NCBI GenBank assembly: GCA_964057225.1
Contig: OZ059898.1
Coordinates: 14,570,001 to 14,634,000 of the forward strand
DNA: 64,000 nt
DNA from: Auanema rhodensis
Taxonomy: Eukaryota; Animalia; Nematoda
Direction: 5' to 3'
The notes beneath the pieces were generated by a model. The model made no database searches. It saw only the letters and a list, made by a program, of their open reading frames with translations, and was not told the DNA's origin. The position numbers and the translations under genes are program-made. This document shows, one piece after another, positions 4,181 through 64,000 of the stretch (positions are counted from its first letter, which is position 1; every line of letters begins with the position of its first letter).

Positions 4181-7100
4181 TTTCTATCTTAGCTAATTCA
4201 ATGTGTTTCATATAATTTACTAATGAACAACTTCAAAAAAATTATCACAGAACTAATAACAATAAGTTTTCTGAGGACAGATAACGTCAATGAGACGTCG
4301 AAGTGCGATGATGAGATAGGCAGATCAAATATCATAAACAAAACAAAGACAACGAGAAAATAAGACAAATCTATTTATAAAAATTATCTTCAGTGTCAGA
4401 TATGTATCAGATGTCATCTGACGTAGTGTTTTTTTAATTCATTACGTCACAATTTGCTTGTTTCTATTGCCCTTCTTCCATCACACATCTAAACCACCAC
4501 CCTCCCCTCTTCGCACATACTCCCCCTCTCACTTTTTCTCTATCTTAATCTCTTTCTCTCTCCTTATCTTACTCTCGTAATTTGAAACAGCTGAAAGTAT
4601 GAGCGGTCAGATTTAACTCAGGTTAGTTGCAGAAACATATCTAATTATTAAAGTCTTTTTCAATTTTCATAATTTTCAATATTATTTAATATTTCTGCAT
4701 GAAAATTTGAGAAAAAACACGACAATTTGGTTTTGAATCATAATGATCAAAATGTTTTTTTTTGTATTTCACATCAAACAGTAGTAAATAATATTCAGAA
4801 TACTGAACAACATCATGATGTGAGGACTGATACATGTATATACCAGAAGATGCTACAGCCATCAGGAGCGTTTACTGAGACAGAACAAGAGCAATAAAGT
4901 AGAATTAAAAGCTTCAACTATTAGCATTCTTTGAGTAAAGTTGTCTTTTAAGCTTATTTATTAGTCGAAATTTTAAAAGAGAAGCCTAATAAGCATTTCG
5001 GAAGAAAAGTTGTAAAGTGAATGGAAAGTAGAAGAGCAATTTGCATAACACAGAGGCGATCATGTTTGCCGACGACATCGACGATGCCTATGACGACAAC
5101 GATAACTAGGACAAAGAGGATGAAAATGGTGATGTTTCACATGAGATCCTAATGAAAAAACATAAATTGACCAGCACAAAGAGTATAATATTGTCAAATG
5201 AATATCTCCATTTTAGATGAAAACTCATTGTTTTTCGTTTGTAAAATAAGGAAACAAAAAAATTTAAAGAGGGTCAATTGAAAGAGATGAGAGAATGAGA
5301 GAGAATTATAAAATAGAATCTTCCTAACTCCCTCTCGTTGTCTTTCTTCTTTTTTTCTTCTCTAGTATCCTCCCTCGATTCCTCCCCCCTCTCTCTCAGA
5401 AGATTCCTTTGAAGCACACGCCAACACATCCAGATTCGGTTGAGAAGCTCACCAAAGAAAACAAAACAGATGTTAAACAGAGCACGCACTGCCTAAGGGA
5501 TGGAGCAAAAGGAGACAAGAGTGAATATTAAAAAATTAGAGAGAGAGTACCAAAACAGAGAGATAGAACGAGAGAATAAGAGCAAGTAAATTAGACAAAG
5601 TAGGCAATTCAGAAAAGACGAAAGTGAAATTCACGAAAATTGTCCAATACTGAGCACAAAATGGCTGAAGACTACGAGAAGAAAAAAATGCGAAACAACC
5701 ATGTGTGAAAGATGCCGTCAATTGGTGCTTGTCTTCAAGCTAATTGTCTAGTAGCAATGCTTTCATTCAGGCCTTGCCTTAAAGGAATAAAAGAAGACAC
5801 ACTCACAATGTAATTTCTATCATACATTTGAAAAGAGGATTGAGGGAGTAGGAGGAGCAGAATTGAAACAATCATCATCGTGCCAGCATTTAAAAAATGT
5901 TTTTTGCCCTCTCTACCACATCTTTCACACGTGTGCTGCTCAATTTAGCTAATATGCAGCAATAGCTAAACTGCTTGACCCAACAGCAGCCTAATCAAGA
6001 ATGAATTCAATTGAAATTCTAATTTTCTTTTTCGTCTCCTTCTCCATCTTGTTCTTCTCCTTCTCTTATATGATTTAACACTTCACGAAATTAGCATATT
6101 CATTTGGGAGGCGCGCGTGTAAATTCACGTCAGAAGCAAATTTATTTCAAATTTTGCAAATAATGTGAACGGTTGTTGTTATTAAATCAGTTAAAACTTT
6201 CTTATTTTACTGTTATGTAACAAATTTGGGAAGTGTAAGTAAAAAAAATTTCAATATCATTGTCAATAGTAAAAGTTGAAAGTTGAAATATCAAAAAATC
6301 AATAAAATTAATACTAAAGCATATGTCAAGTTATATGTAAAGATAATTATGTGAAAATAGAGGTAGAAAATAGAATATATTTGTTATAATACATGGTTCG
6401 ATTGTTATTTATGAGCTCTTTCGTAAGATGTTTGGGTATTCATAAGTAATGTTGTCAGAAATATGTATATTTATATGTAAATTCAGCTATTTATTGTCAC
6501 CACTATTCAAATATGTAAAGTTTCTTTAACATTATATCAAAGAATATATATATATATATATACCTCATGATGTTTATCAGATTTATAATAAAACAAATTT
6601 ATTGAAATAGTACTTTTTCAACTCTTTCTCTCTCTTTAAAAAAAGAAAAGAAGAAAAATCGGAAAACAACGAGCTGGAGTTAGCTCCTATTCATAGAAAC
6701 TGCTGGATCGTGTTTGAATTGAAATAGAAACCTCGACCAGATATCTAGAACGAACAGACTATGATCGAAATGGTGGCAAGATGAACGAACATGCCATCCG
6801 ACATTGTTCATAGAAGGAGGTGGAACGAGAACATGGAAGAGAGGCTGGAGGCGAGAGGATACTCCTCTGAGCTATGTGTTAATGTATCCGGTGATGTGTC
6901 CCAGAACAAAGCTTTGTACTTGTGCAATAATATCAGAATCAACTATATATATTCACGTCACACTCACATGTAACTTAGACATCATAATCTATCAGGAAGT
7001 AATTGGGACGGAAAGAATAATTTGTATGTTTCAAATAGTATACATATATATTAAAAGCAAATGAAGAAACTATAATATCTACGACTTCTTTAAGAGAACC

Positions 7101-36358: not shown

Positions 36359-39300
36359 TTATTCGTCGATAGGTTTACCCCAATTTAGTTTGGACATTTC
36401 GTGCCGGTTACCACGTATGATTAGATTACGCGGTGAGCTACTATGGCAGAAACATAGGGGGTCCTGGCAATCTCCAGACATATCTGCTGATGATGATATT
36501 TCCTCCTGAAGGAGTACTTCGTTCAGAGAGGACGACTCACTGAGATCCCACGAAAAGTTCACCGGTTCCGTCGGGAGTAGTTGCTAAAATTGGGCGGATA
36601 AGATCTGAGATCACAGCTCAATTGCACAGCAATGGAGGATTTGCAACAAAGGAATTGACAGGAAAAACTAATAAAAAAATCCTGAGATCTAAGGAACATG
36701 CAATAACACAAGATGGCCGCACCAATAACACAACACATGACGAACACGAAACCGAAGCCGAATTGTTTAGAACTTTACCCCTGGAATAGGTAAACAATAC
36801 CAATAATGAACTTAAGGAACTGATGATTGCAAAGTTTAAAACGTACTTCTCTAGCAGATTTAACGTTATTATTATCCTCTTCTTCTTGATTTGTACCGTG
36901 GTCTTTTCTCAAGCTGGGAGGAGAACTACTACCTAGCATAGGCCATGGTCGTGCGGTACCCATGTCAATTGTACTAATGTAGTCATTGGCTGTATAAATC
37001 GTCCCCAAACGTTGAATTTTTTCTGCTGTAACTTTCAAAAAAGGATGAATAAGATACATTTAGAGTACAACCTTCGCTTTCAACTTTCCAGGGTTTTTTT
37101 CGGTCTGTACTATCGGTAAGACGTCCGCCAACTGGATGTTGGTTTGCTCTGCAGATAAAGATTGTAAATGAGGTTTTTTTCAGAGAAAAATCACTTCTTC
37201 TCAGCCTCTTCTCGATCTAAGCTTTCTTGTCGTCGCTGTCTCGAACGATCAGTTAATCGTTTTACTTCTTCTCCGTTTGTTGGTACCGGAAGGCTTGACC
37301 TAGTACTACTTCTACTACGAGCTGTATTTGAAGGATAAGCTCCATCTAAATCTGAAGATTAAACAAACATACTTAGGAGCTTATAAGAACAAACCTGTCT
37401 CTTCTTCGGTCATTGAAGATACTGTTTGTTGTGTTTCTGACTGTTTCTGACCAAAAACAGTATTTTCAGAGTTATTAAAAGGAGATGAGGGACCAGGAAG
37501 GGCACTCTGAAATAGGGCAAGGTCGAGTGCGAAGTAGCGCGCTTAAGATAGGAGGTCATAGGTTCGATCTCTGGCAGTGCCAAAAACGTCGATGATGGTT
37601 GTTTCAAGACGGGAATGACAAGAGAGAGATTATAAATGAACAGCTGAGACAAACTTTTTCTTGAACTAATGGGGAAGAAAGTAAATGCCTACAAACCTGT
37701 GCGGAAAAGTTCAGTGGATGCAACGCGTTTCGTGCTGAATCAATCGAGTGTTGGCGATAAGATGATACATTATTTTGGCTTGAGCTTCGAATTCGTCTTG
37801 CTGAAAGAACACTATCCAATTTTGGAACTTCTATCAAATACTTACCAGTAATTATGTCATCAGCACTAGGCCCATCAATTCGTTTGATTTCAACATGATG
37901 AATGCGTTCATTCGATGGTTGTTTTTTGAATTCTTGTGCTATAATTAAAGAAGAGTGATATGTGAAGCTAATTAATAGATATACTTGATGATTCATAACT
38001 TCGGCTCAGGAAGCTGGAAGCATCTCTATTTTCGTGTAGTATAGGATTTTCAGAAGAATTACTACAAAGATTAAAACATTTTTTTAAATCTAGAAACTCA
38101 TTACCTGATAGCATTACTACTGCTACGATTTTCAATTATGGTTTCCCTTTCCTCAGTAATTTTCTTGCCGATAATTGTATCTTCATTATAAGGTAAAACA
38201 GGCCGTTGCATAAACTCTTGAATCCCTTGCACCGTTGCTAAAGGAGAAGCAGAACGTCGGTCGTGAGAGGGAGCAGCTAATGAGCTACTAGCTCCATTCA
38301 AACTCGAAACAGGTCTAGAAATAAAATAAGGTAACATTGGAAAAAAAACAACGTTTTTACCTTTGTAGACCGGCAAAAGAAGTGGCCGTGCTTAGAGAAG
38401 GTGTATTCCAACTCCCAAAACTGGTCGTTGATTCTGAAAAAGAGATCAAATAAGAAAGAAGAAGAAGAGCTATCATATTTACCAGGCTTTTCTACAGTTG
38501 TGACATTATCTGGAGTTGCTCCGAATGTTGTTGTCATATGCTGCTTAGGTATTAAACAGCTCGTGTTTCCAGTATTACTATTAGTAGCAATATTTTTGTA
38601 TGGTTTTGAAACTACTGTGTAAGTGGCACCATTGATAGGTTCAGTTCGTTCCAAAATATCCGAAGACGATCGGAAAGGATTCAATTGGTGTGTCACCGTA
38701 GTTGTTACTGTTGCTGGAGAAACAAGACGAGACGTCGTTGATGGAATAGCTCCGTTTTGATGTTCACCTATAGGTGTTGAAGAGCGAACATCGCCTGGCT
38801 TTATGTTACTTCGATCAGGAATAGGGGAAGTTGGAGGAGGTGGCACAAAGTCAGTGGTAGTCACCGAAATTGCAAGATCTCCAAAAGTTGGAACAATAGG
38901 CTCAGGGTTATTAACAGGCGGATTATTTGGATTCAATTGAGAATATGTAGTACTACTCGCATCCCCAACCTAAAGTTTAAACATTCAAAGTTACATTTCA
39001 ACATGTTGACAACATACTGTTTCATACTCGTTTCCTATAGTTGAATAGTAGTGTTCTCGAACCGGCGGTCCCAATCCTCCTTGTTGACGTAATCTCTCTC
39101 GAACAACCTTAAACGAAAAAAAGTAAATATTGAACGAATTGAGTTAAGTTTACATCGGCACTTTCCCTAACAGTAATATAGCGATATGAAGGTTCCCTAG
39201 AGGCTACTGACTGAGCATCAATCTAAAGCATGCTTATTGTGAGAATTTTCCTCGGTAAATGAGAATATATATATACAAACCTGAGGTGGAGATATATCTA

Positions 39301-48688: not shown

Positions 48689-51600
48689 TTACTACCCTTA
48701 TTTCTGAAACAGTAAACAGTAAGTAGGATGAAGCTTAGAATTCTAGACAAGTAATATAATAGACCAATGAATGAAATAGATAAAGAAGATATATAGAAGA
48801 ATTTGTGTCTTTAGTTTCTTACGAATGATATTATCAAGAGATTGATATGTATTTAGGCAAGCATATATAGATGAAGCCAAAGATAGTAAGAACGGCCAAT
48901 CAAACAATATTATTCATTCGCCCATCCTATATTCAAAAGCTATCAAAGTTATATGGAAAGGTGTAATTTTTCTTTCCTTTTTCTCTTCTTTCTTCTATTT
49001 CTTATTCCTCCATTCTCTCTGCTCTTTCTGCCTATCTATCAATCTATTTATATCTAAAGGTATCTTTGTGAACTTTTCCACTGAAAAATTTAACGGCTTG
49101 TCATCATTCAAAGTGTACGGAATGTTGAAGATTACAAGCAAAACTCTCTGATAAACTTCATCTCAATCGTGATAAGAGGAATATGAAAAACGGAGTTTAT
49201 ATGCTGTTAAGAGTTCCTTCTTTCATATTTGGGAGATGAGATTATGGATGATAAGGAAAAATGAATCAATACGAGAAACAAGAGTATTAGAGTTCAGAAG
49301 TAAAATAGCGCAATGATTTAATCAAATTAAGATTTTCACCACGAAGCTCATTTCTCTCAAAAAATTATCAATTGACGGTATACAATCGTATAGTGCCTTC
49401 AGCCATTGAGTCATCTTGTAGTCTGCACAGGCAACTAGACTTCCGCAAACGTTGAGCTTTCATCGTGAAAAGTTCTGGATCAAAATGTGTCATGTGCCGC
49501 GTGAACATTACTAGCTTCACGAGTGCGTGAACAGTCTGCTGCTCATAAGTGATGAAAAATCAAGATGAGATAATAGAAACACTGATGAAATCATCTGGTA
49601 CAATGTTAATAACTAGCTTAAACTTAAGTTTTATATATGATTAGAGAAACATGTAATTAGTTAATGATGACGAGTAAAGATTTTTTCTGTCTTAGTAAGC
49701 AAAATATGAATGAATCACGAACTGCTCACGACACACAAGCTCTAACACTAACTATACTATGCAATTGAGAAGGAGAGATAGAGCTAGCTAGAGAGAGAGA
49801 GAAGGAGACAAAATTTGAGAGAAAAAGACTAAGAAAAACCAAAAGTCAAGTAAAATTCATTTCAGACTTATGTGGGTGCATGTAGAATGAAATAGTTGTT
49901 TAGCACATTTTAAAGATAACAGAATATAAATACTGATCATATAAGAATCAATGTACATCTTAATAAACTCAAATTATATGAAAATAACAGAAATAAAAGA
50001 ATGAAAGACGAGAAATAGACAGTAATTTGGAAGCAGATTTGTTCATAATTTCATAAGTTGTTTCGTCCTTTTTTTAAGAAAAACTAGTAAACAAAGCAAG
50101 AAATAGAATGGTGAGAATTTGAATTCAGAATATAACTAGTTGTAGACCTTTATATTAGTATATATATAATGAATAAAAATATAGATTCTTGCATAAAGAT
50201 TCACAAAAAAAGTAGAAAATATGGAATAATTTGAGGAAACATTCAGTTCAAATAGTTTGAGCTATACATTTACTAGAAGGTGCGAGGTTAGGAGTTGGAA
50301 TGGGAATCAGAATTTTATGGAAAGTGCTGATCAGAATAGAATAGTGTAGAGGTGTCGAAGATATGAAACTAATAGAGTTAAGCTGTCTTATTGATATCCA
50401 AACAGAATCAAGCACAAAATCAAATAGGAAGAGAGAATAGGGTGAGGAAAATAGGCTTTTGCAGCCTTTTTTTGTGCTTGAATTGAGAACGAATGTGTAG
50501 TCGGCATGTCGACTTCAAGGGCAGGTTTTCAGGAATAAAATATTTGTTTTAGAAGATTTGTACTTAAAAGAGAAAAATTTTGAAAAAATAAAAGTTTTAT
50601 AAATGGTATAAAATGAAAAAAAACTAAGATAGGAAAGAGAGAGAGAGAGAAGTAGAGAAGGATTGAAGACATTCTTCTGAATGAAATTGGCGATATGAAT
50701 GTTGGAGAATTGATTTAAAAAATTAATTTTTCGCAAAAAAAAAACGATAGGTGTTTGAGATGAAAGAGACGACTTTGTTAATAAATAAATCAAATAATCA
50801 ATGTTATACTTAAAGAAGGATTTTATTTCTATAAATATATTACCAAGCTATTCTATTGATTACTGATATTCAAAGAAAATAGATACATATGAATGTATGT
50901 ATGTAAGTACGCAAGATGATGGTTGATGATGGCTGATTGATGAAAAGAAAAAATGTTTATATTTACTTTTGCTGGAAAATAGTTTATGAACGAAATAGAA
51001 AAGATTTTTTTTTGGACTTTGTGAAGGGGTTGAACATGAAAAGGAGCAAAGAATCTGAATACACAAGAGCAACAGGACAACCACAGACGAACGATTTTAT
51101 GAGAAAAGAGGAACTGATCCAGAGGGCACTCAACGGCCGATGGCTGGTCGTTAGGGCTTAAAGAGAGAGAGAGAGAGAGAGAGAGAGGGGGAGGGGGAAA
51201 ATAAGTAAAATATTGACGAAACTGTGGAGTACAAGGAGGAAGAGTCTAAGGGTAAAAAAAGGAATAGCAACAGACAGCATAGATTATAAGAATGACTCAT
51301 CGATATGGTATAGAGAAAATAGTTTCCTATCAAAACTCCTCTCTTATAAATTGCTCTTACTCTGTCTCTCTCTCTATCTATCTATCTACTTGCACTAGTA
51401 TTGTACTGGTTCACATGTATTCGCACCTTCTAGACGGTATAAATGAGTCTTATGAGCACCATAAATAGATATATTCTTGTTTTTTTCCTTAAAAGACGAC
51501 TATTGATTGACTGAAATATGTGATTTATAGCAGATTCTATGTATATAAGTGACTAATCTAACAATTTTCATGAATCAAACCTATGATTGAGGTCTCATCA

Positions 51601-52833
51601 ATGAATTAATGGTTTAGGTTTTTCGTTTTTCTATTTATAAACATAATGATTTCACAATTATTTCTATTTTCAAGCAAAAAAAGTAATCTTATCACGTAAG
51701 CAAGGAACAAATAAATAACTGGATTTGAAGAGTGAAAAGAATCAAGTTAAAACAAAGTATTTATAGGTTATATAGTTAAGAAAATTATTAATATTCAATG
51801 AAAAAAGGATTATTTCAATCATAATTCTTAAGTGAAATAATTTATTTGAAGTGCTTATCGTCAATATTCAACGACCAAACAAAGCGAATGAAAAATGTGT
51901 GAACTAGTGTATGATACACATACGCATACCAGCATACAACTAAGGAAATATAAGAACTTGCTGACGAGAAATGGAGAGAGATATGGAGAGAGAGGGAGAA
52001 TAGTGTGAGCGAGCGAGTGAAATGAAGCAATCGTGAGCTATTAAGAGAGTGATAGGTTAGAGTTGAGACTGTCTAAACCGGAAACAGACTGAAAGTCAAT
52101 GAACATTTTGTTTGGCTGAGACAAAATAATTTTTTGGAGCCTTACGTACATTGAATGCAACTTGTTGCTCTTGAACCTGAACATAGTGCATTATGGTTGA
52201 GGTGAAATTCAAATAAACGTCAATGGTGCGACAATACTGCGGACAAGCAGTCTACTGTTCTAGGTTGAAAAGAAGTTTTTACATGAGCAACAATGACGTT
52301 GTGTCGAGAAGAAGGGGTTGAAAGGTTGAAAAGAAAAGTGGTTGTTAGGTCATATGGATGATCTAATATGCGAGAGATTAGATGAAGTACAAAGGTAAAT
52401 TCAATTAATGTGTGTGTGTTTTTGTTGAAATAAGCAATGCTGCAGAAGGGAGATAAGATGAATTCCAGCAGTATCTGCTTAATTTGTTCAGAAATCAATG
52501 TAACACACAATAATATCAATGAGGAATGTGCGACAGAGTTTGAAGCATTTAAAGTCGTTTCGGACGCTTCTCTGTTTTCATCGTTCTCTCTATATATTCG
52601 TTCGTTGTCTCTCCCTCACTTCGTGCCCTCACATTCTCTCTGTTTTAGTCATTTCTTGCTTTCAACAAACATAGTATCAACATGGCGACAACGAAATAAT
52701 CGTCTCCCTCGACTACAGTCATCTTTACCATCTTATGTTTCTCATAGATCACCTATGAATCAGTTATATCAGAAGCTTATAAATTATTTTAAAAGATAAA
52801 TGGACAGATATTTATACGAATTTAGAAAGAGAG

Positions 52834-52836
<3 letters not shown>

Positions 52837-52872
<36 letters not shown>
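52837..52872. repeat. (AG)n microsatellite
   Basis: Read directly. Confidence 0.95.
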
Positions 52873-52875
<3 letters not shown>

Positions 52876-54975
52876 ACAGCGAGAGAGAGATTAGGTTAGA
52901 TAGACTATAGAGCAAGAAAGATATTATCGGAGAAAACCAAATGAAATTCGAAGTAGTATGAGCGAGAAATACGAGAAAATTACATAAAGATTAAGGTAAA
53001 CGGTACGGAAGAATAAGCTATTGTTAAGATGGCCGAGAAGTAGTTGTTGTTGATAATGAGGAACTATTTGCCTGATGCCCATTGTAACAAATTGATTTTC
53101 AAATAAAAAAAAAGTGTGAGAGAAGTGATTTTCTATTTCATTTTCGTTCACAAAAGTATTCATAGACTCCATAAATAACATAAGGTATAATCAATAATCG
53201 TATCTATGTATCAATATAAAAATAAAAAAAAACTAAAGATGGTATTGCTTTCCAAGAAAAAATAAATGTTTGATCAATAAAAAATGAGGAAGAAAGATAT
53301 TAATTTGATTTGCTTTGAAATAAAAAGCATATTAATAGGAATAATTGTAAAAATTAGAATATTTCAATTAGCATATAAGGTCCACGAGCTCAATTGACGT
53401 TTTATTTTTAAATTCAATTTTGATGAAATCGGTTGTTTATATGAAATATATTGCTTAAATTATAAATACATATAAAAATATAATATAATGAATAAAATTA
53501 AAAATATATCTTTATAAAAATTAAAATAAGCAGAAAACGTAGTAATAATGTAATGTGCATCATAAACATTTGTAATACATATACACATGTAGTTTGAAAT
53601 ACAGATTATTAAGATTGATTGAATGAATGAACTTAATATTTACTATATGTATATATTACCAGTCATTCGTTTTGTTAATTTAAATTTAAGCCAATATACT
53701 TATGATGGGAAAAGTATGGGAGAAATATCACGACAAATGGCTTCATGTTTCTTGGTTACAACATCTATCTCCCCTAGCAACAGAAGCATGAATTAAATTG
53801 AAAAATAGAGTTTTTCATGAAAATTTGAGTGATTGCCTTTTTAACTTTGATATTTTGTTGCCTTTTGCTATTGAAAATTGTCAGGAAACGAGTAGCAACA
53901 TGAATTTTAAATACAAAAAGAATAATTGAACTGATGAAGTGTGCTAAAGCTTTTTTAAAAATATAATAAGTATATAGAATATAATTTTTTAATTTTTCAA
54001 AATATAAAATGAAAAAAAAATGAAAGTTGAAGGCTTAATATTACATCGAAATTCATCTACATATGCTTAAGGAAATTCAATATGATTAGGTAACAACATA
54101 CATAGATGACGTGAGTGAGAATAAATTATTTATTTATAAATATTGCTCTGAATTTTAAAAAAATCAAGGATATACATATGTATACGCATAGTATATTAAA
54201 GTATAATATACTTATTAGAGTTTGAGTATATTGTATGATTTAAATGATGTTTTTATACTTGTGAATTATAAAATTGTATAAAAAAGATAAAAATAGTAGA
54301 AAAGAAGGAAATATAGAGAAATGAATTATGGACGAACCGATCTTTAACTGATGATATTAAAGTGCCAGAGGAGTATACGTGCTTTGTGCGGACACTCATT
54401 TGATATGAGAGGGTATCAAATGATAACAATTGAACAGTAATATATATCAAATTTTGAATTTTCCTTTGATTATATTACGTTTTCCTACTATCTTGTCAAA
54501 TTTGTCATGGATTGTTATTTAAAAAATATGGGAATTAAATATGATCAGCTAGATTTAACATCAAACTAACGTTATATGTGCATGTTTTATAAGAACATTT
54601 TGAAAAACTACGGTTTTAATATGATTTGAAACTTTAGATATGAAATGATTTGTTTAATAGTCATGCACACAGGTGCTGGTTCATTGCGTTCCCTTATCAT
54701 CAAGTACTATCAGAGAGTCGATGATGAAGACTCACGTAGGTAGGAGAGGGAAATCCAAACAAGAGTGAGAACAACAGGGTATGAGGAAGAGCGAGGAGGA
54801 AGTAATTACTTGAAAACCACCTAAATTTATTAATTTTAAATTTTCGTACACTTTAAGCTAATTTTATATTTTTTTAAAAATTACGTGTCTTTTTTATTAA
54901 ACTGAACTGCTGCGTTTTGCAATTTCAAATAATATACATCAGAGCGTCATGTGGCTCGAAGATAAATGAAACAGG

Positions 54976-55047
54976 TCCCATGTGGTCTAGTGGTTAGGAT
55001 TCGTGGTTTTCACCCACGCGGCCCGGGTTCGATTCCCGGCATGGGAA
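54976..55047 (+). tRNA. tRNA-Glu(TTC)
   Basis: TCCCATG/CATGGGA acceptor stem, A-box TGGTCTAGTGG, anticodon arm CGTGG-TT TTC AC-CCACG, B-box GGTTCGATTCC, TTTT terminator just downstream; unique 5' flank. Confidence 0.97.
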
Positions 55048-55240
55048 GCCATCTTTTGGCATCTTCTCTTCTGAATTTCCATATTTTGAAATCAGCTCTC
55101 TTCTAAATCTCTTTTCTGCTTTTAATCGTTTTGTTAGAAGATAATACGGGACCAATTCATCGTTGTTACTTCCTTTGTTGCTTATTCACTTCCTTCAGGA
55201 AAATGATAGAAGAAGTAGTATCATAAGAACAGTTAACGTG

Positions 55241-55312
55241 TCCCATGTGGTCTAGTGGTTAGGATTCGTGGTTTTCACCCACGCGGCCCGGGTTCGATTC
55301 CCGGCATGGGAA
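55241..55312 (+). tRNA. tRNA-Glu(TTC)
   Basis: Identical 72-nt copy. Confidence 0.96.
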
Positions 55313-55505
55313 ACCATATTTTGGCATCTTCTCTTCTGAATTTCCATATTTTGAAATCAGCTCTCTTCTAAATCTCTTTTCTGCTTTTAATCTTATTGTT
55401 AGAAGTTAATACGGGGCCGATTCATCGTTGTTACTTCCCTTGTTCCTTACTCACTTCCTCGAGGTAAATGATAGAAGAAGTAGTATCATAAGAACAGTTG
55501 ACGTG

Positions 55506-55577
55506 TCCCATGTGGTCTAGTGGTTAGGATTCGTGGTTTTCACCCACGCGGCCCGGGTTCGATTCCCGGCATGGGAA
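55506..55577 (+). tRNA. tRNA-Glu(TTC)
   Basis: Identical 72-nt copy. Confidence 0.96.
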
Positions 55578-55713
55578 GCCATCTTTTGGCATCTTCTCTT
55601 CTGAATTTCCATATTTTGAAATCAGCTCTCTTCTAAATCTCTTTTCTGCTTTCAATCTTATTGTTAGAAGTTAATACGGGACCAAATCATCATTGTTCCT
55701 CACGTGGTGCAAC

Positions 55714-55765
55714 TCCTTGTTGGCCTAGTGGTTAAAATTTTTGTTTTGCCCTCACGCAGACCGAG
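55714..55765 (+). pseudogene. Decayed tRNA-Glu-like relic
   Basis: TCCTTGTTGGCCTAGTGGTTAAAATTTTTGTTTTGCCCTCACGCAGACCGAG aligns by eye to positions 1-52 of the array tRNA; no intact B-box. Confidence 0.6.
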
Positions 55766-56099
55766 AAACTTTGTTTTCGCTTTACCTGTTCTTGGTTTTT
55801 TTCCATTTTGAGCTTTCGTTCCTCTTAGATCTATCAGATCAGCCGTAACGAGGAATGGACCTAAACACCATTCTCTATACGAAGTTTTGATATCTTTCTT
55901 TCGCATACAAATATTTGAAAATATTTCATAGTCAACGATTGAATATTCTAGAAAACATCTTATTTGTATTAAATTTTTCATAGAGTAAGCGCAAATGATT
56001 AAAAAAGGTTAAACATGAATTAGTATGGTAATTACAATTTGAAAGAGAAAATTGAAGTAGAATTATCCAGAAATTAAAAAACTTATTACCTTTCATATT

Positions 56100-57854
56100 T
56101 CATAAACAAAAATATTTTAGATGTACAATAAATGATACGAAAATTGTATAATAACTGTCATATATTTGAAGCATACAATTTATGATTGTGATTTGACGGA
56201 ACTTGCTCTGAAATATTAAAACTAAATGAAAATATATGAGAATACTATTGAAAAAATACTGAATGTTCAGAACACTATTCTTTCCAGAAACAAAAGAATA
56301 CATAGTTGTTCGATGATTTTTATCTAATATCAAATATGCTATTGTATAGAAACTGGTACTTAATCCAAATGAAGCCAATAATATCTGGTAAGCAACTTAA
56401 AGATTCATTTTTTATAAGCAAATAGTTTTTATAAACAATCTATTATATATAAGTTACTTTTTGGTATTTCATAATATTGATTTAAATAATCGGCCACATA
56501 ACGAAGACTAAAACATGTCATTGTTATAAAGGTCTTAAAATATAAATTATGGACCGTATTGTTATTATAAACTACTTGACAAAACAGTGATTTTAAAACT
56601 CTAAGATGATGATTATTAGATGATGTTGAACTAATTGACTGTTTTCTTTTGATAGCACGAACAATAAGAACAGTACATACTAATATCATCTAAATTATAA
56701 AATTTAAAAAATAATATTTAGGCGTTGATACACTTTTGTCACAACCCCTTTTCCTCCCCCCACTGTATATTAGCATTTGGGCATGCTTTAAATTTTTTAA
56801 GCATGAACCAGCTTGCATGTCTCTAACTTGGTAGTTCAGGAAGTGCTATCCTACTTATGCAAAAAGATTGAAGAAGAAAATGAAATTTCTAGAGAATTTA
56901 TTTCAAACGTAATGTCTTATTTGGATGATGAACACCAAGCCGAGTAATTTTTTAAAATTAACTTTTGCGCCCAAACTTATGATGGGGGCAATAGGGCAGG
57001 AAGTTCGGAGTAAAAGTGTACCAACTCCTATAAATATATAATATGTAAATATACATTTAAACTTACAAATATAGTTAAAGCTGGTGAGGCAAAGAGTAAT
57101 AAATCCCGTACTTTACCAATATTAGTGTCAGTATTAAGAATGAAATATGATCTCTGTTCAAAATATTTAATTTGTGATTGCGTAAACTAAAGTGAAACAA
57201 TAATTTTTAAAAAAATAAATCGATAATCTAACATTATATTTCATATATTCAAATGTTTTATCATTATCAATTGATAATGAGGCCATAGCACAAGGTGTTA
57301 TTGTATCAAATAATAATAAAATAATAAAAATAATATAAATTGAATACTTTTTCTAAAATATAATTAATCTAAGGATTATTTATATAAAATTATTGGTATA
57401 CGTTGATGATATGTTCTGTACTTGATACAGCTTGTAGACGATATACAAATGATAAATTGAGAAAATCTTGAAACAAACCAAGAAAAAAAGAAAAAAATAG
57501 AAAAGCTGTTTGACATGAACAACCAATCAGATAAATATATCCCTCACAATAAACTATATCATATTTAATTTCAGGGTAAAATTTACTAAAATATGACCAA
57601 GTGATCGCTAGAGCAAACAGAGAAAGCTTCAACTTTTCAATTAAATTTAAAACTTGAATTAAAACTTGAATCACCTGTTGACCGTATATGGATACTTTAT
57701 ATCGACGTACTTCATGAGTTTTAGGCGTTTTTAATGAAACAAAGATAAATAAGCTTATAGTTAATGTATCTAGCAGTGAAACTGTATTTTGCAAAAATAT
57801 ATAAAATGAATTAGCGGGTATAGTATTGCCTCTAGTATATGTATCAGAAAACAT
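56100..57854 (-). CDS. Nematode 7TM chemoreceptor (Str superfamily, Srh/Sri-like); possibly pseudogene
   Basis: Hydrophobic exons with ..FVSLKTPKTHEVRRYKVSI, LSFVYRLQAV, HHLRVLKSLFCQ, TM7-like YYTIFVSFIVHLKY followed immediately by TGA at 56100. Confidence 0.65.
56719..57030. mobile_element. Degenerate MITE-like inverted-repeat element in chemoreceptor intron
   Basis: Left end TAGGCGTTGATACACTTTT vs reverse complement of right end TAGGAGTTGGTACACTTTT (17/19); TA at both ends; weaker internal mirror (CCCCC..TTTGGGC..GCTTG). Confidence 0.65.
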
Positions 57855-58184
57855 TCAACTAATTTATCGAGGGGATCTTTTTGCTATAGGAATTTTTCAT
57901 ATTTTTCAACATCTCGTTCAAAACCATGTAAACGGATTTGATGAACAACAATAATTTTTTTCGCAAAACAAATACAAATTCTATTTTTTATGGAAAATGA
58001 ATTATAACACATAACACATGCAGCTATATGTATTATGATTTTCAATCTGAATGCATATATAATTGATAGAATTTCTATCCTCATCATAAATAATACAATG
58101 TTTCCAAACAAACTGTTCTTTTCAGTTTTATCCCCTCCCATCCCTTCTGAATTCGAGTCCTTAATAGATGCTTATAATTCGGTA

Positions 58185-58221
58185 TGAAAACCACGAATAC
58201 TAACCACTAGACCACATGGGA
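58185..58221 (-). pseudogene. Inverted 5' half (nt 1-37) of tRNA-Glu(TTC)
   Basis: Reverse complement of TCCCATGTGGTCTAGTGGTTAGtATTCGTGGTTTTCA, with 44 nt of the unit's upstream spacer also inverted (58222-58265). Confidence 0.9.
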
Positions 58222-58467
58222 CACGTTAACTGTCCTTATGATACTACTTCTTCTATCATTTACCTGTATGGGAAGTCATCTTTTGGCATCTTCTCTTCTG
58301 AATTTCCATAATTTGAAATCAGCTCTCTTCTAAATCTCTTGTCTGCTTTTAATCGTTTTGTTAGAAGTTAATACGGGACCAATTCATCGTTGTTACTTCC
58401 CTTGTTCCTTACTCACTTCCTCGAGGTAAATGATAGAAGAAGTAGTATCATAAGAACAGTTAACGTG

Positions 58468-58539
58468 TCCCATGTGGTCTAGTGGTTAGGATTCGTGGTT
58501 TTCACCCACGCGGCCCGGGTTCGATTCCCGGCATGGGAA
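58468..58539 (+). tRNA. tRNA-Glu(TTC)
   Basis: Array copy. Confidence 0.96.
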
Positions 58540-58732
58540 GCCATCTTTTGGCATCTTCTCTTCTGAATTTCCATATTTTGAAATCAGCTCTCTTCTAAAT
58601 CTCTTTTCTGCTTTTAATCGTTTTGTTAGAAGTTAATACGGGACCAATTCATCGTTGTTACTTCCCTTGTTGCTTACTCACTTCCTCGAGGTAAATGATA
58701 GAAGAAGTAGTATCATAAGAACAGTTAGCGTG

Positions 58733-58804
58733 TCCCATGTGGTCTAGTGGTTAGGATTCGTGGTTTTCACCCACGCGGCCCGGGTTCGATTCCCGGCATG
58801 GGAA
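58733..58804 (+). tRNA. tRNA-Glu(TTC)
   Basis: Array copy. Confidence 0.96.
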
Positions 58805-58997
58805 GCCATCTTTTGGCATCTTCTCTTCTGAATTTCCATATTTTGAAATCAGCTCTCTTCTAAATCTCTTTTCTGCTTTTAATCTTATTCTTAGAAGTTA
58901 ATACGGGGCCGATTCATCGTTGTTACTTCACTTGTTCCTTACTCACTTCCTCGAGGTAAATGATAGAAGAAGTAGTATCATAAGAACAGTTAACGTG

Positions 58998-59069
58998 TCC
59001 CATGTGGTCTAGTGGTTAGGATTCGTGGTTTTCACCCACGCGGCCCGGGTTCGATTCCCGGCATGGGAA
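58998..59069 (+). tRNA. tRNA-Glu(TTC)
   Basis: Array copy. Confidence 0.96.
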
Positions 59070-59262
59070 GCCATCTTTTGGCATCTTCTCTTCTGAATTT
59101 CCATATTTTGAAATCAGCTCTCTTCTAAATCTCTTTTCTGCTTTTAATCTTATTCTTAGAAGTTAATACGGGGCCGATTCATCGTTGTTACTTCCCTTGT
59201 TGCTTACTCACTTCCTCGAGGTAAATGATAGAAGAAGTAGTATCATAAGAACAGTTAGCGTG

Positions 59263-59334
59263 TCCCATGTGGTCTAGTGGTTAGGATTCGTGGTTTTCAC
59301 CCACGCGGCCCGGGTTCGATTCCCGGCATGGGAA
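59263..59334 (+). tRNA. tRNA-Glu(TTC)
   Basis: Array copy. Confidence 0.96.
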
Positions 59335-59527
59335 GCCATCTTTTGGCATCTTCTCTTCTGAATTTCCATATTTTGAAATCAGCTCTCTTCTAAATCTCTT
59401 TTCTGCTTTTAATCTTATTCTTAGAAGTTAATACGGGGCCGATTCATCGTTGTTACTTCCCTTGTTGCTTACTCACTTCCTCGAGGTAAATGATAGAAGA
59501 AGTAGTATCATAAGAACAGTTAGCGTG

Positions 59528-59599
59528 TCCCATGTGGTCTAGTGGTTAGGATTCGTGGTTTTCACCCACGCGGCCCGGGTTCGATTCCCGGCATGGGAA
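59528..59599 (+). tRNA. tRNA-Glu(TTC)
   Basis: Array copy. Confidence 0.96.
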
Positions 59600-59792
59600 G
59601 CCATCTTTTGGCATCTTCTCTTCTGAATTTCCATATTTTGAAATCAGCTCTCTTCTAAATCTCTTTTCTGCTTTTAATCTTATTCTTAGAAGTTAATACG
59701 GGGCCGATTCATCGTTGTTACTTCCCTTGTTGCTTACTCACTTCCTCGAGGTAAATGATAGAAGAAGTAGTATCATAAGAACAGTTAGCGTG

Positions 59793-59864
59793 TCCCATGT
59801 GGTCTAGTGGTTAGGATTCGTGGTTTTCACCCACGCGGCCCGGGTTCGATTCCCGGCATGGGAA
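59793..59864 (+). tRNA. tRNA-Glu(TTC)
   Basis: Array copy. Confidence 0.96.
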
Positions 59865-60057
59865 GCCATCTTTTGGCATCTTCTCTTCTGAATTTCCATA
59901 TTTTGAAATCAGCTCTCTTCTAAATCTCTTTTCTGCTTTTAATCTTATTCTTAGAAGTTAATACGGGGCCGATTCATCGTTGTTACTTCCCTTGTTCCTT
60001 ATTCACTTCCTCGAGGTAAATGATAGAAGAAGTAGTATCATAAGAACAGTTAACGTG

Positions 60058-60129
60058 TCCCATGTGGTCTAGTGGTTAGGATTCGTGGTTTTCACCCACG
60101 CGGCCCGGGTTCGATTCCCGGCATGGGAA
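60058..60129 (+). tRNA. tRNA-Glu(TTC)
   Basis: Array copy. Confidence 0.96.
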
Positions 60130-60322
60130 GCCATCTTTTGGCATCTTCTCTTCTGAATTTCCATATTTTGAAATCAGCTCTCTTCTAAATCTCTTTTCTG
60201 CTTTTAATCTTATTCTTAGAAGTTAATACGGGACCAATTCATCATTGTTACTTCCCTTGTTCCTTACTCACTTCCTCGAGGTAAATGATAGAAGAAGTAG
60301 TATCATAAGAACAGTTAACGTG

Positions 60323-60394
60323 TCCCATGTGGTCTAGTGGTTAGGATTCGTGGTTTTCACCCACGCGGCCCGGGTTCGATTCCCGGCATGGGAA
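60323..60394 (+). tRNA. tRNA-Glu(TTC)
   Basis: Array copy. Confidence 0.96.
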
Positions 60395-60587
60395 GCCATC
60401 TTTTGGCATCTTCTCTTCTGAATTTCCATATTTTGAAATCAGCTCTCTTCTAAATCTCTTTTCTGCTTTTAATCGTTTTGTTAGAAGTTAATACGGGACC
60501 AATTCATCGTTGTTACTTCACTTGTTCCTTACTCACTTCCTCGAGGTAAATGATAGAAGAAGTAGTATCATAAGAACAGTTAACGTG

Positions 60588-60659
60588 TCCCATGTGCTCT
60601 AGTGGTTAGGATTCGTGGTTTTCACCCACGCGGCCCGGGTTTGATTCCCGGCATGGGAA
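60588..60659 (+). pseudogene. tRNA-Glu(TTC) variant, probably non-functional
   Basis: G10>C at 60597 (A-box/D-stem) and C56>T at 60642 (B-box GTTCGA>GTTTGA). Confidence 0.75.
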
Positions 60660-60852
60660 GCCATCTTTTGGCATCTTCTCTTCTGAATTTCCATATTTTG
60701 AAATCAGCTCTCTTCTAAATCTCTTTTCTGCTTTTAATCGTTTTGTTAGAAGATAATACGGGACCAATTCATCATTGTTACTTCCCTTGTTCCTAACTCA
60801 CTTCCTCGAGGTAAATGATAGAAGAAGTAGTATCATAAGAACAGTTAACGTG

Positions 60853-60924
60853 TCCCATGTGGTCTAGTGGTTAGGATTCGTGGTTTTCACCCACGCGGCC
60901 CGGGTTCGATTCCCGGCATGGGAA
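60853..60924 (+). tRNA. tRNA-Glu(TTC)
   Basis: Array copy. Confidence 0.96.
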
Positions 60925-61117
60925 GCCATCTTTTGGCATCTTCTCTTCTGAATTTCCACATTTTGAAATCAGCTCTCTTCTAAATCTCTTTTCTGCTTTT
61001 AATCTTTTTGTTAGAAGTTAATACGGGGCCGATTCATTGTTGTTACTTCCCTTGTTGCTTATTCACTTCCTCGAGGTAAATGATAGAAGAAGTAGTATCA
61101 TAAGAACAGTTAACGTG

Positions 61118-61189
61118 TCCCATGTGGTCTAGTGGTTAGGATTCGTGGTTTTCACCCACGCGGCCCGGGTTCGATTCCCGGCATGGGAA
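61118..61189 (+). tRNA. tRNA-Glu(TTC)
   Basis: Array copy. Confidence 0.96.
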
Positions 61190-61382
61190 GCCATCTTTTG
61201 GCATCTTCTCTTCTGAATTTCCACATTTTGAAATCAGCTCTCTTCTAAATCTCTTTTCTGCTTTTAATCTTTTTGTTAGAAGTTAATACGGGGCCGATTC
61301 ATTGTTGTTACTTCCCTTGTTGCTTATTCACTTCCTCGAGGTAAATGATAGAAGAAGTAGTATCATAAGAACAGTTAACGTG

Positions 61383-61454
61383 TCCCATGTGGTCTAGTGG
61401 TTAGGATTCGTGGTTTTCACCCACGCGGCCCGGGTTCGATTCCCGGCATGGGAA
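61383..61454 (+). tRNA. tRNA-Glu(TTC)
   Basis: Array copy. Confidence 0.96.
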
Positions 61455-61647
61455 GCCATCTTTTGGCATCTTCTCTTCTGAATTTCCATATTTTGAAATT
61501 AGCTCTCTTCTAAATCTCTTTTCTGCTTTTAATCGTTTTGTTAGAAGTTAATACGGGGCCGATTCATCGTTGTTACTTCCCTTGTTCCTTACTCACTTCC
61601 TCGAGGTAAATGATAGAAGAAGTAGTATCATAAGAACAGTTAACGTG

Positions 61648-61719
61648 TCCCATGTGGTCTAGTGGTTAGGATTCGTGGTTTTCACCCACGCGGCCCGGGT
61701 TCGATTCCCGGCATGGGAA
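61648..61719 (+). tRNA. tRNA-Glu(TTC)
   Basis: Array copy. Confidence 0.96.
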
Positions 61720-61912
61720 GCCATCTTTTGGCATCTTCTCTTCTGAATTTCCATATTTTGAAATCAGCTCTCTTCTAAATCTCTTTTCTGCTTTTAATCT
61801 TATTCTTAGAAGTTAATACGGGACCAATTCATCATTCTTACTTCCCTTGTTGCTTATTCACTTCCTCGAGGTAAATGATAGAAGAAGTAGTATCATAAGA
61901 ACAGTTAACGTG

Positions 61913-61984
61913 TCCCATGTGGTCTAGTGGTTAGGATTCGTGGTTTTCACCCACGCGGCCCGGGTTCGATTCCCGGCATGGGAA
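61913..61984 (+). tRNA. tRNA-Glu(TTC)
   Basis: Array copy. Confidence 0.96.
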
Positions 61985-62177
61985 GCCATCTTTTGGCATC
62001 TTCTCTTCTGAATTTCCATATTTTGAAATCAGCTCTCTTCTAAATCTCTTTTCTGCTTTTAATCGTTTTGTTAGAAGTTAATACGGGGCCGATTCATCGT
62101 TGTTACTTCCCTTGTTCCTTACTCACTTCCTCGAGGTAAATGATAGAAGAAGTAGTATCATAAGAACAGTTAACGTG

Positions 62178-62249
62178 TCCCATGTGGTCTAGTGGTTAGG
62201 ATTCGTGGTTTTCACCCACGCGGCCCGGGTTCGATTCCCGGCATGGGAA
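62178..62249 (+). tRNA. tRNA-Glu(TTC)
   Basis: Array copy. Confidence 0.96.
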
Positions 62250-62442
62250 GCCATCTTTTGGCATCTTCTCTTCTGAATTTCCATATTTTGAAATCAGCTC
62301 TCTTCTAAATCTCTTTTCTGCTTTTAATCTTATTCTTAGAAGTTAATACGGGACCAATTCATCATTCTTACTTCCCTTGTTCCTTATTCACTTCCTCGAG
62401 GTAAATGATAGAAGAAGTAGTATCATAAGAACAGTTAATGTG

Positions 62443-62514
62443 TCCCATGTGGTCTAGTGGTTAGGATTCGTGGTTTTCACCCACGCGGCCCGGGTTCGAT
62501 TCCCGGCATGGGAA
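62443..62514 (+). tRNA. tRNA-Glu(TTC)
   Basis: Array copy. Confidence 0.96.
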
Positions 62515-62707
62515 GCCATCTTTTGGCATCTTCTCTTCTGAATTTCCATATTTTGAAATCAGCTCTCTTCTAAATCTCTTTTCTGCTTTTAATCTTATTC
62601 TTAGAAGTTAATACGGGACCAATTCATCATTGTTACTTCCCTTGTTCCTTACTCACTTCCTCGAGGTAAATGATAGAAGAAGTAGTATCATAAGAACAGT
62701 TAACGTG

Positions 62708-62779
62708 TCCCATGTGGTCTAGTGGTTAGGATTCGTGGTTTTCACCCACGCGGCCCGGGTTCGATTCCCGGCATGGGAA
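62708..62779 (+). tRNA. tRNA-Glu(TTC)
   Basis: Array copy. Confidence 0.96.
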
Positions 62780-62972
62780 GCCATCTTTTGGCATCTTCTC
62801 TTCTGAATTTCCACATTTTGAAATCAGCTCTCTTCTAAATCTCTTTTCTGCTTTTAATCTTATTCTTAGAAATTAATACGGGACCAATTCATCATTCTTA
62901 CTTCCCTTGTTCTTTATTCACTTCCTCGAGGTAAATGATAGAAGAAGTAGTATCATAAGAACAGTTAACGTG

Positions 62973-63044
62973 TCCCATGTGGTCTAGTGGTTAGGATTCG
63001 TGGTTTTCACCCACGCGGCCCGGGTTCGATTCCCGGCATGGGAA
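62973..63044 (+). tRNA. tRNA-Glu(TTC)
   Basis: Array copy. Confidence 0.96.
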
Positions 63045-63237
63045 GCCATCTTTTGGCATCTTCTCTTCTGAATTTCCATATTTTGAAATCAGCTCTCTTC
63101 TAAATCTCTTTTCTGCTTTTAATCTTTTTGTTAGAAGTTAATACGGGGCCGATTCATTGTTGTTACTTCCCTTGTTGCTTATTCACTTCCTCGAGGTAAA
63201 TGATAGAAGAAGTAGTATCATAAGAACAGTTAACGTG

Positions 63238-63309
63238 TCCCATGTGGTCTAGTGGTTAGGATTCGTGGTTTTCACCCACGCGGCCCGGGTTCGATTCCCG
63301 GCATGGGAA
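63238..63309 (+). tRNA. tRNA-Glu(TTC)
   Basis: Array copy. Confidence 0.96.
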
Positions 63310-63502
63310 GCCATCTTTTGGCATCTTCTCTTCTGAATTTCCACATTTTGAAATCAGCTCTCTTCTAAATCTCTTTTCTGCTTTTAATCTTTTTGTTAGA
63401 AGTTAATACGGGGCCGATTCATTGTTGTTACTTCCCTTGTTGCTTATTCACTTCCTCGAGGTAAATGATAGAAGAAGTAGTATCATAAGAACAGTTAACG
63501 TG

Positions 63503-63574
63503 TCCCATGTGGTCTAGTGGTTAGGATTCGTGGTTTTCACCCACGCGGCCCGGGTTCGATTCCCGGCATGGGAA
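63503..63574 (+). tRNA. tRNA-Glu(TTC)
   Basis: Array copy. Confidence 0.96.
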
Positions 63575-63767
63575 GCCATCTTTTGGCATCTTCTCTTCTG
63601 AATTTCCATATTTTGAAATTAGCTCTCTTCTAAATCTCTTTTCTGCTTTTAATCTTATTCTTAGAAGTTAATACGGGGCCGATTCATTGTTGTTACTTCC
63701 CTTGTTGCTTATTCACTTCCTCGAGGTAAATGATAGAAGAAGTAGTATCATAAGAACAGTTAACGTG

Positions 63768-63839
63768 TCCCATGTGGTCTAGTGGTTAGGATTCGTGGTT
63801 TTCACCCACGCGGCCCGGGTTCGATTCCCGGCATGGGAA
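63768..63839 (+). tRNA. tRNA-Glu(TTC)
   Basis: Array copy. Confidence 0.96.
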
Positions 63840-64000
63840 GCCATCTTTTGGCATCTTCTCTTCTGAATTTCCATATTTTGAAATTAGCTCTCTTCTAAAT
63901 CTCTTTTCTGCTTTTAATCTTATTCTTAGAAGTTAATACGGGACCAATTCATCATTCTTACTTCCCTTGTTCTTTATTCACTTCCTCGAGGTAAATGATA

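Follow-up and report, generated by a model that had tools for sequence, protein, structure and literature searches.

The window, which is the whole 64,000-nucleotide stretch of DNA that was analysed, is gene-bearing over its first 54 kb, where an RRM protein, a phosphomannose isomerase exon and a snoRNA were found, and carries a tandem array of tRNA genes over the remainder. ARAGORN detected 24 tRNA-Glu(ttc) genes in the window, all on the + strand and all within 54976-63839, and Tandem Repeats Finder gave a repeat period of 265 bp with 0% indels. Each unit contains a full tRNA gene and the units are arranged head-to-tail, as in tandem tRNA gene arrays. With the Rfam model RF00005 (threshold 29), 23 of the copies scored 64.1 bits, as compared to 56 bits for the one at 60588; all 24 formed a cloverleaf above the covariance-model threshold with an assignable anticodon, as nuclear tRNA genes do. 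The data confirmed the preliminary description of 24 full-length tRNA-Glu(TTC) copies, 23 of them identical, on a 265-bp pitch in an array exceeding the window. The possibility of a tRNA-derived SINE or a decayed tRNA-derived satellite was rejected, as 23/24 copies are identical, full length and score 64 bits. In the gene-side flank, most exon-sized open reading frames of the window had no Pfam match, a word search for sister-species synteny of the exon closest to the array gave no candidate, and a glycosyltransferase-8 gene, guessed by eye at 46.6-48.7 kb, had no Pfam support.

The same locus had been described as one array. The tandem repeat is real but not continuous, since the stretch 55698-58267 (2.57 kb) is out of register with the 265-bp repeat. 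Three gene copies are followed by about 2.6 kb of non-repeat sequence ending in an inverted unit fragment, and then by 21 further copies (Table 1). The two blocks are mutually out of phase, the genes flanking the interruption being 2962 bp apart (11 x 265 + 47). The first unit of the left block lacks upstream spacer and, with 11 differences from the consensus, diverges more than any other complete unit; the last unit of this block is broken off at unit position 192. A founder flank was sought in the 200 nt 5' of the first tRNA, which scored 18 against the spacer as compared to a shuffled mean of 17.8; being no more spacer-like than shuffled sequence, this flank shows that the first copy does not display an ancestral spacer.

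Table 1. Coordinates of the tRNA-Glu array, its parts and the sequences interrupting it (positions in the window)
Feature	Position	Strand	Details
Left block, 2.7 units	54976..55697	+	Three intact tRNA-Glu(TTC) genes: 54976-55047, 55241-55312, 55506-55577
AT-rich non-repeat stretch dividing the array	55698..58184		About 26% GC; unique within the window
Decayed tRNA-like relic	55720..55763	+	About 72% identity to tRNA positions 7-50; 22 nt past the breakpoint
Inverted 82-nt unit fragment	58185..58266	-	Unit 221-265 and tRNA 1-37; break in the anticodon loop
Main block, 21.6 units	58268..64000	+	Begins at tRNA position 66; 21 tRNA-Glu(TTC) genes; continues past the window end
Reference unit	58468..58732	+	tRNA 58468-58539; A box (tRNA 8-18) TGGTCTAGTGG; B box GGTTCGATTCC
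Variable spacer core (one example)	58574..58677	+	Unit 107-210; 15/16 shared polymorphisms
Variation-poor zone (one example)	58678..58838	+	Unit 211-265, tRNA 1-72, unit 73-106; single shared polymorphism (unit 261)
Only variant tRNA copy	60588..60659	+	G10C in A box and D stem; C55T, the invariant C of B box GGTTCGA

We compared the window with independent short-read assemblies of two runs, X15 and X9, which come from two studies. Unique DNA runs into the first tRNA by 7 and 23 nt in X15 rec4 and X9 rec21, respectively, with zero differences. The junction 55697/55698 is likewise spanned without differences by X15 rec5 (55624-56685) and X9 rec22 (55654-56147), and X9 rec25 (57874-58229) passes from the insert into the inverted fragment, which shares 96-98% identity with array units and directly adjoins the main block. 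The word depth of the insert equals that of the gene-side flank, and its sampled words were all present in seven runs of two studies; an eighth run contained 99% of them, and an independent run 92%. Pfam and Rfam searches of the insert gave no match. As it also has no terminal inverted repeats beyond its tRNA-like ends and no other copies in the window, its identification as a transposon was rejected. The tRNA-like relic inside it is no longer recognised by Rfam; its local alignment score of 31 exceeds the maxima obtained from 2000 shuffles (29) and from 407 genomic segments (22).

RNA polymerase III (Pol III) genes of this type have the consensus TRGYNNARNNG for the A box, at positions 8-18, and GGTTCGANTCC for the B box. 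The internal A and B boxes of the array tRNA match these forms, and the boxes earlier reported for each copy are readily read in the sequence. A T4 run lies 7-10 nt 3' of each tRNA, with three further T4 runs in the next 66 nt; in the reference unit, the first is at 58546-58549 and the others are at unit positions 109-112, 137-140 and 145-148. The anticodon loop of the tRNA itself contains a T4 run. Hence, of the T4 terminator assigned to each copy, the presence of T4 after every gene stands, but T4 is not an absolute stop here and the strength of termination is uncertain. The spacer is 60% pyrimidine, in agreement with its description as pyrimidine-rich. The sole altered tRNA copy carries changes in both promoter boxes and, judged by these substitutions, is probably dead.

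Variation among the units was concentrated in the spacer, as had been noted earlier: it contains 31 of the 33 unit positions that are polymorphic, and diversity was 0.0023 in the tRNA as compared to 0.035-0.039 in the spacer. Polymorphic sites common to two or more units numbered 0/72 in the tRNA and 16/193 in the spacer (Fisher p = 0.008). Within the spacer, 15 of these 16 shared sites were confined to a single 104-nt arc (circular permutation test, p about 1e-4), leaving a variation-poor zone of 161 nt in which the tRNA is flanked by 55 nt on its upstream side and 34 nt on its downstream side. Variants reaching at least 10% in the read sets, in contigs over the left-block units (54976-55697), were located only in the central spacer, at unit positions 153, 155, 158, 187 and 205 in X15 and X9, which derive from this organism; variants at positions 176 and 179 reached 10% in X17 (organism D) only. 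The 23-24 units carry 18 spacer haplotypes, and identical neighbours occur only in short runs, for example at 58998-59792 (three units) and 60853-61382 (two units). A higher-order repeat was not recognised, the mean difference between units showing no cycling with distance.

Assemblers have difficulty with near-identical tandem repeats, and the array might be a few true copies inflated in this way. The depth of the unit argues against this. Summed word depth over the array was 1.2e5-6.7e5 in X15, as compared to about 235 for unique contigs, and 4.5e3-4.6e4 in X9, as compared to about 12, so that the unit stands hundreds to thousands of times above unique DNA in two independent studies, about 1000 times as a rough value, summed contig depth being equivalent neither to copy number nor to the share of cells. 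In X15, 2546 distinct contigs fell on the array stretch. In addition, the unique junctions recur without a single difference, and collapsed or duplicated reads would not yield 18 spacer haplotypes. We therefore regard an assembly artefact as extremely improbable; the outcome of only a few copies, named beforehand as the sign of assembly expansion, was not obtained, and the copy number of the array is roughly of the order of a thousand. A different explanation is that the array forms the start of a germline-restricted block which body cells discard, as the preliminary description had also proposed. The Auanema rhodense preprint counts arrays of several tRNA loci among the eliminated DNA (10.64898/2026.08.27.747507), and gene-bearing DNA does stop where the array begins. 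We scanned for 29-nt odd palindromes with GGC-N3-GCC and related cores, a motif taken from its published description rather than from an A. rhodense matrix, and for telomere repeats. No good GGC-N3-GCC palindrome with matching arms was present in 44-64 kb; the best palindromes in the whole window, with 9/14 arm pairs, were at about 5.77 kb (GGC-N3-GCC) and about 40.9 kb (GCC-N3-GGC), both far from the array. Telomere repeats were not found near the array, and the loose ends listed included none with TTAGGC, those of X15 being library adapter. Unique contigs had depths of 201, 179, 287 and 272 on the gene side and 203, 217, 246 and 284 inside the array in X15, and of 6.5-19 and 11-19, respectively, in X9, the comparison inside the array covering its first 3.3 kb. 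The border thus showed no break motif, no new telomeres among the listed ends and no lowering of whole-worm depth in the first 3.3 kb, where unique DNA within the array and on the gene side had equal depth in both studies. The left edge of the array is no programmed-DNA-elimination boundary, the elimination reading is not supported at this edge, and we consider a germline-restricted block highly unlikely. The array would lie in an arm of the chromosome that is retained in the soma, a placement for which gene content forms part of the basis.

The explanation that competes most directly concerns activity. A tRNA gene may have been caught in a repeat expanding by replication slippage and unequal exchange, giving a silent tDNA satellite held in repressive chromatin, with little or no contribution to the tRNA pool, whose copies would look intact owing to the youth of the array and its constant homogenisation. 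About 19,500 tRNA genes in the genome are far beyond the need of translation, and the preprint argues that repeats accumulate where selection is weak (10.64898/2026.08.27.747507). Moreover, in Arabidopsis, tRNA genes in clusters are silenced although their boxes are intact (PMC10701932), so that intact signals are no proof of use. The spacer was not found in any run recorded as RNA; one 295-nt contig of depth 4, from a run whose RNA nature is a guess, reads spacer-tRNA-spacer, and the same would be expected from trace DNA of a repeat with 1000 copies. However, homogenisation alone should spread tRNA variants in the same manner as spacer variants, in contrast to the 0/72 and 16/193 shared sites observed. 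Shared variants avoid the 161-nt zone around the gene, and for the left-block units the array copies sampled from two independent read sets show the same avoidance. Silence, together with the origin it presupposes, is therefore a possible but rather unlikely explanation in our estimation.

We consider it probable, on balance, that the locus is a very large head-to-tail tRNA-Glu(UUC) array of a rhabditid nematode, probably Auanema rhodense, homogenised by exchange, with the gene and its flanks kept by selection, and retained in the soma. Each 265-bp unit constitutes a complete RNA polymerase III gene, with A and B boxes, a T run 7 nt 3' and back-up runs. The array may have grown by tandem duplication, with unequal crossing-over and gene conversion preserving the likeness of its units; exchange between units is suggested because the spacer variants are mosaic and the edge units are the most diverged. 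Selection would then purge any unit whose gene or flanks are damaged. The variation-free zone corresponds to the region where TFIIIB and TFIIIC would be expected to act and transcription to terminate, and the absence of variation from about 55 nt upstream through about 34 nt downstream suggests that the copies are kept transcribable. The pattern of variation fits selection preserving every RNA polymerase III unit. The earlier proposal of a dosage-amplified Pol III locus is therefore sustained in part: the intact boxes, the T4 runs and the variation-free zone agree with it, but about 19,500 tRNA genes oppose an adaptive need for dosage. Given that number, selection on a single copy must be very weak, and the variation-free zone may reflect something other than tRNA supply. 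The body cells of A. rhodense discard nearly all tandem repeats. A bolder reading, to which we give little credence at present, is that this thousand-copy tRNA-Glu array is nevertheless retained in the soma, kept transcription-competent by selection, and is a working Pol III super-locus, neither eliminated junk nor silenced; its role would be either that of a bulk tRNA source or that of a chromosome-organising block of TFIIIC sites.

The array is real and well preserved. In itself it is not a discovery, as tandem tRNA arrays are known in several eukaryotes and have been outlined for this species. In Entamoeba, units often contain several different tRNAs together with short tandem repeats, and almost all tRNA genes lie in arrays; here there is a single gene per unit, and in an animal. 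Entamoeba histolytica likewise has long head-to-tail tRNA arrays with short units, for which, in what PMC2888827 relates of Clark 2006 and Tawari 2008, there is no clear function and a structural role has been suggested. The clusters of Arabidopsis thaliana also resemble the present array in their tandem units, intact A/B boxes and terminators, copy change by whole units and a border pseudogene (PMC10701932; Hummel 2020 cited there), although their copy numbers range from 4 to a few dozen, as compared to about a thousand here, and DNA methylation and histone marks have been shown to silence them (PMC10701932). Zebrafish, stickleback and Nematostella have thousands of tRNA genes, mostly clustered, with independent origins in many eukaryote lineages (PMC2888827); their clusters are mostly of mixed tRNAs, whereas this array consists of one isoacceptor at a strict pitch.

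Apart from the Auanema rhodense preprint of August 2026, our literature search gave no publication dealing with tRNA arrays in nematodes. The preprint, probably on the same genome as the window, counts 19,554 tRNA loci, of which only 215 are pseudogenes, places tandem blocks of several tRNA loci, with units of 167-504 nt, among the germline-restricted repeats, and holds that repeats accumulate where somatic selection cannot see them (10.64898/2026.08.27.747507). Its arrays are mentioned in one sentence, without isoacceptor, unit anatomy or variation pattern. Unlike those germline-restricted arrays, the tRNA-Glu array shows no elimination boundary at its left edge and is probably located in retained DNA. 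If it does lie in a retained arm, then at least some tRNA arrays of this genome are not confined to the germline, a point of relevance to the preprint's view of repeats. The sharp footprint of constraint matches the region expected for Pol III pre-initiation and termination, and could offer a simple sequence-based way to tell functional arrays from decaying ones in the genome.

Twenty-four tRNA-Glu(ttc) genes were located by ARAGORN between 54976 and 63839, on the + strand throughout. The Rfam tRNA model (threshold 29) matched 23 of these copies with 64.1 bits and the copy at 60588 with 56 bits. Tandem Repeats Finder returned a period of 265 bp with 95-97% matches and no indels, and unit-by-unit comparison revealed an identical tRNA sequence in 23 copies, with G10C and C55T in the remaining one, at 60588. 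The gene count, the number of identical copies and the period reported in the preliminary description were thereby confirmed. The tandem array does leave the window as described earlier, but its split into two blocks had been omitted. Phase is not kept across the split: the left block ends at unit position 192 (position 1 being the first nucleotide of the tRNA) and the right one resumes at tRNA position 66, which rules out a simple insertion as an account of the split.

Each unit comprises a 72-nt tRNA, in which the A box (TGGTCTAGTGG) and the B box (GGTTCGATTCC) were read from the array tRNA sequence, and a 193-nt spacer of 36% G+C. The spacer was earlier called pyrimidine-rich, and pyrimidines indeed make up 60% of it. 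The T4 terminator described earlier is also present, as a first T4 run 7-10 nt 3' of the gene, and three further T4 runs occur at unit positions 109-112, 137-140 and 145-148. An extra T4 lies inside the tRNA, in the anticodon loop (positions 32-35). Therefore, T4 is no absolute stop in A. rhodense (A. rhodensis), and termination is probably spread across the back-up T4 runs. The 24 units (54976-64000) showed zero indels although substitution diversity in the spacer is 3.5%, and the unit length itself may be constrained.

Features of the array, its interruption and the neighbouring DNA (window coordinates)
Feature	Position	Strand	Remarks
Phosphomannose isomerase exon	near 11.2 kb		
RRM exons	near 29.5-30.1 kb		
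C/D-box snoRNA sn668	37587-37651	+	Rfam RF01162, 44.6 bits, threshold 40
Left block	54976-55697	+	2.7 units
Interruption	55698-58267		2.57 kb, out of register with the repeat
Decayed tRNA-like relic	55720-55763	+	about 72% identity to tRNA positions 7-50
Inverted unit fragment	58185-58266	-	82 nt, unit 221-265 and tRNA 1-37
Right block	58268-64000	+	21.6 units, continues past the window end

We compared the 52700-58600 stretch with Logan contigs of four public sequencing runs (X15, X9, X17 and X18), of which X9 belongs to a study separate from that of X15 and bears an organism label differing from the source species. The transition from unique DNA to the first tRNA was covered by contigs with zero differences in X15 (54756-54982) as well as X9 (54716-54998). 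Zero-difference contigs also spanned the left breakpoint (X15, 55624-56685; X9, 55654-56147), and an X9 contig (57874-58229) joined the interruption to the inverted fragment. The array junctions are real. Summed word depth, a coarse figure taken from contigs that conveys an order of magnitude and is not a copy number, was 1.2e5-6.7e5 on the array as compared to about 235 on unique contigs in X15, and 4.5e3-4.6e4 as compared to about 12 in X9. On the examined stretch, 2546 distinct X15 contigs were found. To an order of magnitude, the DNA holds hundreds to a few thousand copies. The array of intact tRNA-Glu(UUC) genes, arranged head to tail and with its left edge at 54976, is real and reaches a very high copy number.

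The other two runs gave faint signals. The contigs of X17, labelled organism D, were confined to 55363-55657; they are short and unit-like (113-212 nt, 2-4 differences, depth 4-15), with none on the flanks, a finding that points either to a relative with a low-copy unit or to carry-over DNA of a thousand-copy repeat. A single 295-nt contig with spacer-tRNA-spacer structure (55359-55652, depth 4) was obtained from X18, a run guessed to be RNA that had no contig on unique DNA; the single contig could represent read-through transcription or trace DNA of such a repeat.

Nearly all variation had been assigned to the spacer in the preliminary description, and counting bore this out, with 31/193 polymorphic sites in the spacer as compared to 2/72 in the tRNA (Fisher p = 0.003) and a nucleotide diversity of 0.035-0.039 as compared to 0.0023. 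Sites common to at least two units numbered 16/193 in the spacer and 0/72 in the tRNA (p = 0.008). One 104-nt arc (unit 107-210) contained 15 of these 16 shared sites (circular permutation test, p about 1e-4), and the other 161 nt, made up of 55 nt upstream, the gene and 34 nt downstream, held only one shared variant. A constraint footprint thus surrounds the gene. When left-block units (54976-55697) were compared with reads, variants reaching at least 10% were found at unit 153, 155, 158, 187 and 205 in X15 and X9, both runs of this organism, and at unit 176 and 179 only in X17. All seven lie in the central spacer and the array tRNA genes are free of them; thus, the pattern within the window extends array-wide in two samples.

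Among 23 comparable units there were 18 spacer haplotypes, which combine one small set of variants in mosaic fashion, and identical adjacent units occurred only in short runs, as exchange between units would yield. Private changes were present at the edges, in the unit at 54976 and the partial one at 58268, where homogenisation should be least effective. In the sole altered tRNA copy, the changes affect G10, which belongs to both the A box and the D stem, and the C that is invariant in the B box; judged from its sequence, this copy seems to have drifted after loss of its promoter.

Just past the left breakpoint lies the tRNA-like relic, with an alignment score of 31 as compared to a maximum of 29 in 2000 shuffles and of 22 in 407 background segments of the window; an Rfam scan of the relic gave no tRNA model match. 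It is followed by about 2.4 kb of AT-rich DNA, which occurs once within the window and gave no match in Pfam and Rfam searches. The interruption ends with the inverted fragment, which shares 96-98% identity with array units and has its break in the anticodon loop. The interruption is therefore flanked by opposed tRNA 5' halves, one old and one fresh, and may tentatively be read as a rearrangement at the array edge, either an inversion or a fold-back.

Genes populate the first 54 kb of the window, and apart from the tRNA genes Rfam matched only sn668 in the window, a snoRNA indicative of a rhabditid nematode. ORFs of the 50000-54000 region had no Pfam match, and a protein word search with the exon nearest the array as query gave no candidate. 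This region, within the 5 kb preceding the array, has a strong positive GC skew (0.22-0.31), and (AG)n microsatellites are present at 51162-51187 and 52824-52890.

A preprint on A. rhodense (10.64898/2026.08.27.747507) reports a germline genome of 180.9 Mb, 61% of it eliminated, with 28 break sites, a 29-nt palindrome at each, and 97% of genes in retained DNA. The preliminary description had suggested that the array might mark the edge of a germline-restricted block. However, unique-contig depth in X15 was 201, 179, 287 and 272 on the gene side and 203, 217, 246 and 284 inside the array, that in X9 was 6.5-19 and 11-19, respectively, and neither run showed a depth step at the array edge. The loose ends listed included no telomeric ones, those of X15 being library adapter, and a search around the array found no telomere repeats. 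In the related Oscheius tipulae, the break motif is built around a GGC-N3-GCC core, and no such palindrome with matching arms exists in 44-64 kb of the window. The array left edge gives no sign of an elimination boundary. The best GGC-N3-GCC match in the window (5770-5778, 9/14 arm pairs) lies inside gene-bearing DNA, distant from repeats, and is probably due to chance; GCC-N3-GGC near 40.9 kb scores equally. Since the first 54 kb bear genes, the region fits retained DNA, and the array is probably retained in the soma.

We consider it somewhat probable that the copies are kept able for Pol III transcription. The array would have grown and been homogenised via unequal exchange, with selection maintaining Pol III competence of the copies. 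With so many copies, selection on each must be weak, and hence what left the footprint may instead be selection acting at the level of the whole array, or on the binding of factors. The main rival, possible though distinctly less likely, is a silent satellite in which a tRNA gene is present by chance; it would fit the excessive tRNA gene number of the genome and has a precedent in Arabidopsis, where tRNA clusters with intact boxes are silenced (PMC10701932), but gives no reason for variants to stay clear of the gene and the DNA flanking it. That the array edge is an elimination edge is improbable, given the level depth and the lack of palindrome and telomere repeats described here. Assembly expansion of a few copies, considered earlier, is hardly credible, as junctions were reproduced in X15 and X9 and array depth was high in both.

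Large tRNA clusters arose independently in many eukaryotes, and Entamoeba, zebrafish, stickleback and Nematostella possess them (PMC2888827), as do Arabidopsis and A. rhodense. The preprint counts 19,554 tRNA loci in A. rhodense and, in one sentence, places arrays of 5S, several tRNA and U2 loci among germline-restricted repeats; we found no other literature on nematode tRNA arrays. The present array is one more example, well preserved, of a type already known, from a species whose tRNA arrays the preprint has already outlined. To this it adds, modestly, the anatomy of an array edge, a constraint footprint, and evidence that no elimination site bounds this array and that its probable location is in retained DNA.
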